Below the pieces are notes generated by a model that did not search any database, was not told the DNA's origin, and saw only the letters and a program-made list of their open reading frames with translations. A DNA stretch of 64,000 nt, taken from positions 310,001-374,000 of the forward strand of contig JAKMXF010000300.1 in assembly GCA_024704765.1 (NCBI GenBank). The letters are read 5' to 3'. This document shows positions 60,819 through 64,000 of the stretch, one piece after another (position 1 is the stretch's first letter; each line of letters starts with the position of its first letter). The position numbers and the translations under genes are program-made. Source of the DNA: Oopsacas minuta (lineage: Eukaryota > Animalia > Porifera).

Positions 60819-62065
60819 CTAGAATACAATTGTACTTAGCATAGTGCCCAATGACTGAATGATATTAGAAGCTAGAGTGAGATCAACTTTCTCTTCCAGA
60901 TGCCGTTTGGGATCTTGTTTGCCAACATTCTTAATAGCGAGTTGTTCAGGAGTCATCTTATCTTCCTCTACAACAGCTTTATTATATGACTTAGCTAGTT
61001 CTAACATCTCAATTACTATCTTTTCATTATCATCAGCATGTTCTTTGAACTCAACAAGCTTCAAACCTTCCATCCAAGTTTTCTTATGTAAATTCATCAA
61101 CATTTTCTGCTCTAATTCGTTTTTCTTATAATTGATAGGCATGGAGTAGTAGTGTCTACCCAGACCATGTATAACTGCCTGTATAGACGGCTTTTGGAGA
61201 TGACCTGTAGAAATTTAAGAGAGTACAATATTTATTTATTATTAGATAATTAACAAGTAGTGTGACCTCAGTAAACTGTTGTGTCGGGAACGCAGAAAAT
61301 GCTACCATCCCATTTCCCCGTTTGTAGAGGTTTTACTATACCTATATTAGATGTAGTCTGTCTAGATTCTTGTGTAGGAGCTAGCGTAGCAGTACCAATA
61401 AGCCTGAAGGCATCAATCACTACTTTCCCTTTAACACTTTGTATAGGATCAACAACCACAGCAACAGCTCGACTAGTTAGAGCTTCAAAACTCTGTTGTG
61501 TGTTAATATCCACACCTGATAGCCAGCAGCCGAATCCGGGGTGTGAATGATACCATCCTACCACCATCTCTGGCCTACCTGTCTGTTTAAGCATGTCAAG
61601 CATTTTAGCCTGGAACACAGGGTCTACAGCCTCAACACTTACTCCTGTACCTGACTGAGGCATCGCAAACACGTCGATTACTTTAACTGTGTAGTCGTCG
61701 ACAAAATCTCCTACAACGAGACATAAAGATTAATCAGTTAATTCTGTAAGTATCAGGCAATTGAAACCCAACATAGAAAGTTCACGTGTGGATAATTACA
61801 CTTATAACTTCCGAATACAATTATATGGAATAAATTTAGAATGATGAATTGAACTCTGGTAGCAAATTACAATAAATTGGCGGAATTTCTTACCTAACAT
61901 TAGTCCCATTACCTCCATGGGTACCCCTGCTCTCCCATGCTTTAGCATCTTGAGTAGAGCTAGAGAAGATATGTAGACCTGCTCAGCTGTGTCCATAGTA
62001 GGACCATCTTGTTGAGCCCCCATCATACCAGGCATACGACGACCTAACTGAAGGAGACTTTCCAT
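60819..62065 (-). CDS. PSMD14: 26S proteasome deubiquitinase Rpn11
   Basis: [38 protein letters not shown] motif [23 protein letters not shown]. Introns 61711-61893 and 61205-61341. Confidence 0.97.
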
Positions 62066-62583
62066 TTTAGTGCTCTAATTATCAGTGAATAAATGATTAC
62101 TTAAAATTCACAAAAACAAAAATTGTTGTAAACTTGTTGTCATGGGGAAAAGTACGGTCTGTTTGATATTAGGTGACGACATCATGAATTAACGTTAAAT
62201 GCGAATTTTGAGGATTATAATTTCGTAATGAATAAATAATTGCAACACAATGTAAACATAATATATTTTTGAAAAATCATTAAAATCTTAGAATTCAATG
62301 ATACTTTCTCCAAAAACTAGCATAACACATCTGTATTATTAATCATCTCCTTACGAATGAGCAGGACCGGATATAATGGGAATGCGGTAATGATTACAAA
62401 AGTTTATAATGATGCTAACTCTAATATAGTCTATAATAGCAAAAATGTAGTAACTCAATGCCATATTGGCTCTAACTGTAGGCATAATTAGAGTACATTA
62501 TGTGGAGAGTTTGTGGTGGCAGTATATCTACGCCTAATCCTACACAGCTATTTAATCTAGAAACTACAATTACAAATAATAAT
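62066..62583. promoter_or_regulatory. Putative bidirectional promoter PSMD14 / ADF-H-Rab gene
   Basis: Head-to-head arrangement only. Confidence 0.4.
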
Positions 62584-64000
62584 ATGGCAACATCTGAGTG
62601 TTTGAAACTAGATAATGAAGTTCAAATTCATTACAGTGATATTGTAAAGGCTAAATGTGCTGCCACACCTTGGAAAATATTCACATTCGGAGAAGAGGAT
62701 CACAGTACTCTACTGTTCCTGGAGGAGGGCTCCTCCCTCAATGATTTCAAAGCCAATTTGAGTAGCGATAAAGTTCTATTCGGGCTGTTACGCATAGCAG
62801 ATAACAAACCAGCGAATTTAAAAGGAAAACTAATCTTAGTGTATTGGTGCGGACAGAATTCAGAAGCAGAATTGAGAACTGAGACTGAGCAACTATACAA
62901 GAGTAACGGAGAGGTTGTATTTAGCAAGTGTGAAAGGTTTATTTCCATTGAAAGCCTCGAGGAATTGGAAATGAAGTTAAAAGTTATACTCACCAGCAAA
63001 GAGCATAAAAGAATCGATAGTATTAAGGACAAAAATTCTACTCTCGACAATATAAGCGGTGGAAAAGGCAAGAACAAATACAAATCGAAACGTAAGGGTA
63101 AAGCTATTAGAGAGAGCAGTGTACTTGATGAAGGAAGAGATAGCATGACACCAGACAATGGTAGTGGAGATGAGTTGGTATTCCCAGCACCTACAAGTGC
63201 AAGTGAGTTTTGCTTATTTTTAGGGACTAGTATAATAATATGGCCGGTAAGGGGAAATTCGCCCCTGGTACATTTCTCCAGATCTTCACAAGATCACACC
63301 ATGAAATCTATTTTTGCAATTTTGAGCATATCAATTGGACGAATATTTTAAAATATAGCCATGCAAAGTGGTTGATGCACAAAGACGTAAGTCATTCAAA
63401 TCTATTCTGCAAATTTCCACCGAAAATGTACTGTTTGCAAGCTATGTTAATCAGGTACTAAATTTGGTAAGATAACGCGGCTACTGATAGAGCACGTAGT
63501 TATAACTGTATCTACATAATTTTCAATTATAATACACACAATGTATTCTTGTAGCTCAGAGCCCAGTCGAAGATAAACCAGAAACCAAGGGATTAAATGC
63601 ATTAGAAAGAATCTTAGCTACAGACAGTATAAGTTACGCTAATGTAGAAAAGATGAAGGTTATCATAGTAGGAGATTGTCAAGTCGGTAAGACGCATCTT
63701 CTACACACGTATGTCTATGGAAAATCTAAGAAATACCATCCACAGGTAACTGTAGGAGTAGACCATCTATACCGTGTAGTTAACACTGATATTAATAAAC
63801 CGATTAAACTTGAGTTGTGGGATACTAGCGGGGAGGAGCGATATAGAGCTTTAGCTTCTGTATGGTATAGGCATGCTGTAGGAGCTATGGTTGTATTTGA
63901 TTTGACTGATGCTGATTCTCTGGATAGTATACCAAACTGGATCGAGTCAATTAACAGGTACACAGACTGCAAAGCATACATCTTGGTAGGAAACAAGAAT
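62584..64000 (+). CDS. ADF-H (drebrin/coactosin-like) domain joined to a Rab-like small GTPase; 3'-truncated by the window
   Basis: Exon 62584-63202 encodes ADF-H (WKIFTF, KVLFGLLRI, KLILVYWCG). A phase-1 GTGAGT...TAG intron 63203-63554 leads in frame into GDCQVGKT, TVGVD, WDTSGEERY, YRHAVGAMVVFD, VGNK. Confidence 0.72.

Follow-up and report, generated by a model that had tools for sequence, protein, structure and literature searches.

As a rule, a Rab is a bare switch whose only route to the cytoskeleton is through recruited effectors; in the few known long Rabs, the additions are calcium sensors and coiled coils. A locus of the glass sponge Oopsacas minuta raises the question of whether a Rab can carry an actin-binding domain of its own. 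The locus occupies positions 62584-64000, at the end of a 64-kb stretch of contig JAKMXF010000300.1 (assembly GCA_024704765.1; genome paper, PMC10280926); this whole stretch is called the window below. A first-pass annotation had proposed that one spliced gene here encodes an ADF-H (actin-depolymerizing factor homology) domain followed by a Rab-type GTPase (G) domain. That proposal is borne out by a splice joint in RNA, a public gene model that joins both exons, an intron kept in six more genomes, and intronless paralogues that hold both domains.

All features of the gene lie on the plus strand. Exon 1 (62584-63202) starts with the ATG at 62584 and comprises 206 codons (to 63201) and one base (A, 63202) of a split codon. 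The intron (63203-63554, 352 nt) has GT..AG ends; its donor, GTGAGT, starts at 63203 and its acceptor, ..ttcttgTAG, ends at 63554, both in phase 1. Exon 2 (L001:5056-5756 in the source contig) begins at 63555 and is cut by the window end at 64000, with the stop codon lying about 255 nt beyond. Splicing completes the codon A+CT, which specifies Thr, and from the 63202/63555 joint onward the reading frame is open to the window end. The donor, the acceptor, their shared phase and the open frame into the G domain had all been predicted, and all are present in the sequence.

Four sequencing runs from one study cover the stretch. Three are flat in depth, as is DNA, and one (X4) is exon-shaped: its depth is very high on the exon of Rpn11, the upstream gene, zero between the genes, about 840-1130 on exon 1 from 62647 and about 700-1130 on exon 2. 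The adaptor ends are TruSeq in X4 and Nextera in two of the three DNA-like runs. RNA-seq and mate-pair libraries were described for the Oopsacas genome project (PMC10280926). From its depth shape, its adaptors and its fit with these libraries, we infer that X4 is RNA. X4 contains a joint from 63202 to 63555, exactly the bases at which a junction had been expected, with GT..AG ends and a depth of 819 versus an exon depth of about 900. Both exons are spliced together in RNA. A contig that retains the intron (63178-63584) has a depth of 57 in X4. The depths of the joint and of the retained intron together account for the depth of exon 2 (about 860), so that none of it is left over for another leader spliced on at 63555.

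The main competing explanation is that two adjacent genes lie here, a coactosin-like gene and a small Rab that starts at the ATG at 63653, and that the fused model is an annotation or read-through artefact. In its favour, an in-frame Met (63653) opens the G domain, prokaryote-style gene callers list the exons on the relatives' contigs as separate open reading frames (ORFs), and the RNA cover is incomplete at the 5' end. However, the GT..AG joint is as deep as the exons. Moreover, the segment between the acceptor and this Met (63557-63652) contains neither a stop nor an in-frame ATG in Oopsacas, and can be coding only if it is read from exon 1. Its 32 codons are conserved at the protein level, with the motifs ..SPVE.. 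and ..SISYANVEK. Transcripts that begin at 63555 and use the ATG at 63653 were not seen: the depths add up without them, and the 32 codons are conserved as protein.

The relatives bear on the same question. Six homologues of exon 1, 51-69% identical, were found in ENA assemblies. Where genes were called, the order on the relatives' contigs is an NHL-repeat gene, Rpn11 (-), ADF-H (+), Ras (+), PWI (-) and a CLC channel (-). The relatives found, all in assemblies of close gene order with Oopsacas, are probably glass sponges. Six further distinct genomes (seven with the source) have a phase-1 intron at the homologous spot and, once spliced, one ORF of 434-446 amino acids. These introns of 53-170 nt were placed by consensus donors (GTAAGT, GTGAGT, GTAAGA or GTATGT, the last being needed for L010) and homology. 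The resulting set, termed group A, was aligned as eight spliced models from seven distinct genomes. The ratio of nonsynonymous to synonymous substitution rates (dN/dS), calculated by region with the Nei-Gojobori method and taken from the closer pairs since synonymous sites are saturated in most, was about 0.11 for the ADF-H domain, 0.35 for the exon 1 part of the linker, 0.33 for the pre-Met segment of exon 2, 0.08 for the G domain and 0.21 for the C-terminal tail. The ADF-H-Rab architecture is under purifying selection in the relatives. The phase and position of the intron are kept in seven of seven distinct genomes, and intronless paralogues, described below, carry both domains in one ORF; both facts speak against two separate genes. 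We regard a single fused protein as nearly certain and the two-gene explanation as very improbable.

The public gene model of the locus, P0001 (467 amino acids), combines the two exons and matches both PF00241 and PF00071. Its start is an ATG further upstream, at 62500, which adds 28 residues (62500-62583, plus strand). This start is common to none of the relatives, most of which have in-frame stops in this region, and the 28-residue extension is probably an annotation artefact. The product is likely a protein of 439 residues (P0001 residues 29-467), because in all relatives the protein starts with MATS.. from the ATG that corresponds to 62584, not to 62500. The predicted start codon at 62584 rests on conservation and on a fold that requires residues 8-22, rather than on reads; X4 is without a contig over 62397-62646 and has a depth of about 840 from 62647 on.

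Exon 1 had been read as an ADF-H domain of the drebrin/Abp1/coactosin type, and this assignment holds. The motifs WKIFTF, KVLFGLLRI, KLILVYWCGQN and FISIESLEEL are all present. Pfam Cofilin_ADF (PF00241) matches residues 17-128 with 35.2 bits (cut-off, 22.4; E value, 1.2e-8), covering profile positions 5-117 of 125. The best PDB sequence matches of exon 1 by phmmer are coactosin-like protein, drebrin and Abp1. The domain extends over residues 8-137 (62605-62994), as delimited by Pfam, phmmer against the PDB, and AlphaFold with Foldseek. An AlphaFold model of residues 1-147 has a predicted template modelling score (pTM) of 0.72, and its element order, H-E-E-H-E-E-H-E-H, is that of the ADF-H fold, in which helices, a long central one among them, flank a mixed sheet. 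The predicted local distance difference test (pLDDT) score of most 10-residue blocks of the domain is 69-86 in this domain-only model and 80-93 in the full-length model. The top Foldseek match is human coactosin-like protein (1t2l, TM 0.73/0.78; up to 0.73/0.81) at 23-24% identity, followed by Abp1, drebrin, HIP-55 and GMF, with TM scores of 0.65-0.73 for Abp1, drebrin and HIP-55. There are 66 PDB fold matches at E <= 0.001, and all 50 that were listed are ADF-H proteins.

Human coactosin-like protein needs Lys75 in its F-loop (PMC4161475). In the phmmer alignment to 1vfq/1t2l, ..NLKGKLILVYW stands opposite ..SKRSKFALITW, and Lys82 of the sponge protein (62827-62829) is aligned with Lys75. The equivalent residue is Lys in six of seven group A species.

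The fusion may be real and its ADF-H domain may nevertheless bind another partner, as GMF binds Arp2/3, or fold onto the Rab switches as an autoregulator. Identity to proven actin binders is 10-24%, the good matches in fold include GMF structures, the ADF-H domains of group A and of the paralogues share about 15% identity with few invariant residues, and one relative (L009) is without the Lys75 equivalent. On the other hand, in both sequence and fold the domain comes closest to coactosin-like protein, Abp1 and drebrin, which bind the sides of F-actin, and six of the seven species keep the F-loop Lys. As for autoregulation, AlphaFold shows no confident contact between the domains, although the rows of its alignment are mostly unpaired. 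We consider these alternatives together unlikely, though still serious contenders, and F-actin side-binding remains the preferred reading of the domain.

The ADF-H domain is joined to the G domain by a linker of about 100 residues. Its exon 1 part (62995-63201) has a basic patch, KSKRKGKAIRES, followed by an acidic SGDE patch, and is predicted to be disordered; residues 141-220 have a pLDDT below 50 in the full-length AlphaFold model. Mean identity in this part is 46%, and the KRK..IRES and SGDE patches are conserved.

The G domain starts at 63653 and runs to the window end; in the product it spans approximately residues 238-407 of 439. It had been called Rab-type from its motifs, which are all present: G1 GDCQVGKT, the P-loop (63671-63694); the RabF1-like switch I TVGVDH (63749-63766); switch II WDTSGEE (63818-63838), in which Glu replaces the catalytic Gln; and G4 GNKN (63989-64000), cut at the window end. 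Database matches agree with the Rab type. Pfam Ras scores 104 bits on exon 2 as cut by the window, and the top 60 PDB matches are all Rab/Ypt proteins (Rab1, Ypt1, Rab11, Rab14, Rab39 and Rab35). All of these lie within 109-119 bits, and no named Rab subfamily stands out. The segments VGVDH, KLELW, RYRALA, WYRHA and VVFDLT align with Rab1 IGVDF, KLQIW, RFRTIT, YYRGA and IVYDVT, and these five are recognisable as RabF1-F5 with conservative changes.

The nucleotide-binding motifs are complete (GDCQVGKT, switch I Thr272, DTSG, GNKND and ETSA) and conserved among the relatives. The Glu in the Gln position of switch II, Glu300, is invariant in group A. At the positions of Ras G12-G13 the P-loop has Cys-Gln, where typical Rabs, Rab1 among them, have Ser-Gly; one group A species has GDCEVGKT. 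The exchange of Gln for Glu and the Cys-Gln of the P-loop suggest an altered GTPase or an altered response to GTPase-activating proteins (GAPs), and hydrolysis may be slow or GAP-insensitive. The protein ends in ..KKKKKEKCCHK, a polybasic run followed by a CCXX-type Rab prenylation motif. The tail KKKK[ED][KR]CCxK is kept in nearly all group A species and CCxK in all, save CC-K in one; a doubly geranylgeranylated tail would be predicted from these residues.

Given these catalytic-site changes, a further possibility is that the G domain no longer switches, being a locked GTPase or a pseudo-GTPase. It would then provide just a prenylated membrane anchor and an interaction surface, and the protein would be a constitutive membrane-actin linker. 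The changes (WDTSGEE and the Cys-Gln at Ras G12/G13) are conserved in group A, and the paralogues keep WDTAGQER. However, GxxxxGKT, the switch I Thr, DxxG, NKxD and ETSA are intact under strong purifying selection, and a Gln-to-Glu exchange in Ras is not known to abolish hydrolysis. We consider a locked G domain improbable, and a divergent Rab is the reading we follow.

The full-length protein was modelled by AlphaFold on an alignment of group A and the paralogues, in which most group A rows are unpaired exon products. The ADF-H domain (8-137) and the G domain (238-407) are confident, the tail has a pLDDT below 50, and the model as a whole has a pTM of 0.45 with no confident interdomain contact. 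The model indicates two domains on a flexible tether, and is weak evidence against contact between them.

These features can be combined into a proposed mechanism. The geranylgeranylated polybasic tail would anchor the Rab domain in a membrane, probably one rich in acidic lipids such as the plasma membrane, and the ADF-H domain would bind the side of an actin filament, like coactosin, Abp1 and drebrin. The linker of about 100 residues would allow the membrane-bound Rab to reach filaments some tens of nanometres off, and the Rab-marked membrane would be tethered to F-actin directly, with no need of an additional effector or motor protein. The nucleotide and GDP dissociation inhibitor (GDI) cycle of the Rab would set its residence on the membrane and hence the tethering. 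We put this mechanism forward tentatively, at somewhat less than even confidence. A bolder version holds that glass sponges have evolved and expanded single-polypeptide membrane-actin clutches, in which the nucleotide state would gate the binding of the protein's own ADF-H domain to F-actin, e.g. by fold-back on the switches, and which would replace the chain of Rab, effector and motor in organelle positioning in syncytial tissue. This version is speculative and, in our judgement, quite unlikely.

Taken as a whole, the explanation that we favour, with moderate confidence, is a fused 439-residue protein consisting of a coactosin-like ADF-H domain, a linker and a divergent prenylatable Rab, which would serve as a membrane-actin tether. 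Several observations weigh against it. The run type of X4 is absent from the record, and its identity as RNA is inferred. The shorter side of the contig that carries the joint has 29 letters, just under the 31-letter rule; this is about the maximum for a k=31 unitig at a bubble between the spliced and the unspliced path, and its position is exactly that of the predicted splice sites. The RNA-like cover of X4 starts at 62647, which is 63 nt past the ATG at 62584. The identity of the ADF-H domain with coactosin-like protein is just 23-24%, the residue equivalent to Lys75 is Ile in L009, and some ADF-H proteins bind other partners, as GMF binds Arp2/3 and coactosin-like protein binds 5-lipoxygenase. 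Finally, with Glu for the catalytic Gln and an atypical P-loop, normal Rab cycling may fail.

The architecture was also looked for outside group A. When 1.84 billion representatives were searched exhaustively with phmmer, there were 54,002 matches in the Ras superfamily, of which the best 150 were listed. Among these 150, one protein, P0138 (438 amino acids), was the only one aligned across both domains in one stretch; Pfam finds Cofilin_ADF (34.6 bits) and Ras (134.6 bits) in it. Its gene is intronless and belongs to a tandem array in which four or more genes of this kind (438, 410, 410 and 409+ amino acids) alternate with Rab-only ORFs, in the same sample as a group A orthologue. A profile search added 15 clusters in which the two families are combined (312-424 amino acids), all from ENA assemblies. 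In P0138 and these clusters, termed group B, one ORF covers both domains, and the genes lie in tandem arrays; the scores of group B members are close to the cut-off of the best 150 of 54,002. A word-based full-length search had returned no other protein with ADF-H and Ras; this result was rejected as a limit of sensitivity, since the exhaustive and profile searches did find some. Twenty long candidates of the exhaustive search were scanned with Pfam, 18 of them multi-stretch matches, and the only fusion, P0138, was a single-stretch match. The 19 others are without ADF-H by Pfam, and nearly all are tandem multi-G-domain proteins. P0008, a protein of 447 amino acids in a Logan assembly, combines an N-terminal half of low complexity with a C-terminal Rab; it shares WDTSGEER with group A but is without ADF-H.

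The two groups differ in several features. Group A has the P-loop GDCQVGKT, switch II WDTSGEER, G5 ETSA, a C-terminal end of KKKKEKCCxK and one phase-1 intron, whereas group B has standard-type P-loops (e.g. GSVGVGKT and GCSGVGKS), the standard switch II WDTAGQER, G5 ECSG, a C-terminal end of GCQxC.. and no intron. Their ADF-H domains are about 15% identical, with few invariant residues. When the G domains are placed in a tree together with the 59 closest Rabs of the database, groups A and B each form a clade, and A is isolated and fully supported. A tree that unites A, B and the neighbouring Rab-only ORFs scores 55.9 log-likelihood units above the free quick-search tree (p-AU, approximately unbiased test, 0.968). 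The split of groups A and B in the quick tree search, being 55.9 units worse, was rejected as a search artefact. Because the uniting tree scores better, the data favour one fusion event followed by duplication; they are compatible with that history and no proof of it.

Four of the top exhaustive-search matches, P0026, P0027, P0028 and P0029, show three or four matched stretches, and by Pfam P0026 and P0029 have at least three complete Rab-type G domains in one ORF. They may be genuine multi-GTPase proteins, or else tandem genes that were merged. On the array contig of a relative (L011:1-17317), the Rab-only ORFs group with the ADF-H-Rab genes in the tree, and about 5.7 kb upstream of the array lies a gene for a 2853-amino-acid LRRK/Roco-like protein (Ank, Roc, COR and kinase).

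The first-pass annotation had named no described protein of this architecture, and the searches agree. Full-text literature searches yielded no paper on an ADF-H plus Rab architecture, and the Oopsacas genome paper (PMC10280926) mentions neither Rab nor cofilin/ADF. No named protein with the pair was found in database searches, ESM Atlas searches with P0001 and P0138 gave no cluster of at least 50 members that combines both families, and JGI metagenome contigs scanned with the ADF-H alignment gave no relative. The architecture is predicted but undescribed: it exists as an automatic gene model in public annotation.

Among known systems, the large Rabs Rab44, Rab45/RASEF and Rab46/CRACR2A-L have N-terminal EF-hands and coiled coils (PMC8303950). 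The sponge protein resembles them in having a long N-terminal region and a C-terminal prenylatable Rab domain (residues 238-407 of 439), and the Atlas structure neighbours of P0001 include large Rabs, via the Rab part. In contrast to them it has an ADF-H domain and a disordered linker, and a Pfam scan of it gave no EF-hand or coiled-coil family. Coactosin and COTL1 are the best sequence and fold match to residues 8-137, with the Lys75 equivalent kept. However, coactosin is a free single domain of about 140 residues, whereas the sponge ADF-H domain is the N-terminus of a 439-residue Rab protein with a predicted membrane anchor. The layout recalls Abp1, drebrin and HIP-55, in which an N-terminal ADF-H domain likewise leads, through a long charged stretch of low complexity, to a C-terminal module; theirs is an SH3 domain that recruits endocytic proteins, and that of the sponge protein is a Rab with a predicted lipid anchor. 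Rab27a-melanophilin-myosin Va and Rab35-fascin couple a Rab-marked membrane to actin via separate effectors or motors. The outcome proposed for the sponge protein is the same, but its putative actin-binding module lies in the same polypeptide.

If true, a Rab that has its own actin-binding domain, and is conserved, expressed and duplicated, would be a natural tether of membrane to actin in minimal form, and would demonstrate that this link can be hard-wired in evolution. With two well-understood domains and obvious point mutants, the protein would make a simple test system for combining nucleotide state, lipid anchoring and filament binding. It may bear on the organisation of the cytoplasm in syncytial glass sponges, and the Rab family gains a lineage-specific branch with unusual catalytic residues.

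Upstream of the fusion gene, on the minus strand, lies the gene of the proteasome deubiquitinase Rpn11/PSMD14 (61268-62065), with JAB and RPN11_C domains and a JAMM motif. Its first coding exon ends at 62065, and the two genes stand head to head with about 520 nt between the start codons, which suggests that Rpn11 and the fusion gene share a bidirectional promoter region. The pairing is kept in the contigs of all relatives. In one relative's contig (L004:4748-6981; ctg326496, ERZ26869290), the ADF-H, Rab and Rpn11 genes are present in two mirror-image copies that meet within the Rab exon; this looks like a fold-back assembly artefact. The Oopsacas intron, at 352 nt versus 53-170 nt in the relatives, contains a 73-codon ORF (63240-63461), and no second copy of the intron sequence was found within the 64-kb window. 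At position 62928 the RNA-like contig has A where the genome has G (897/897 depth), a synonymous change of AAG to AAA at Lys115, which is more likely an allele than editing.

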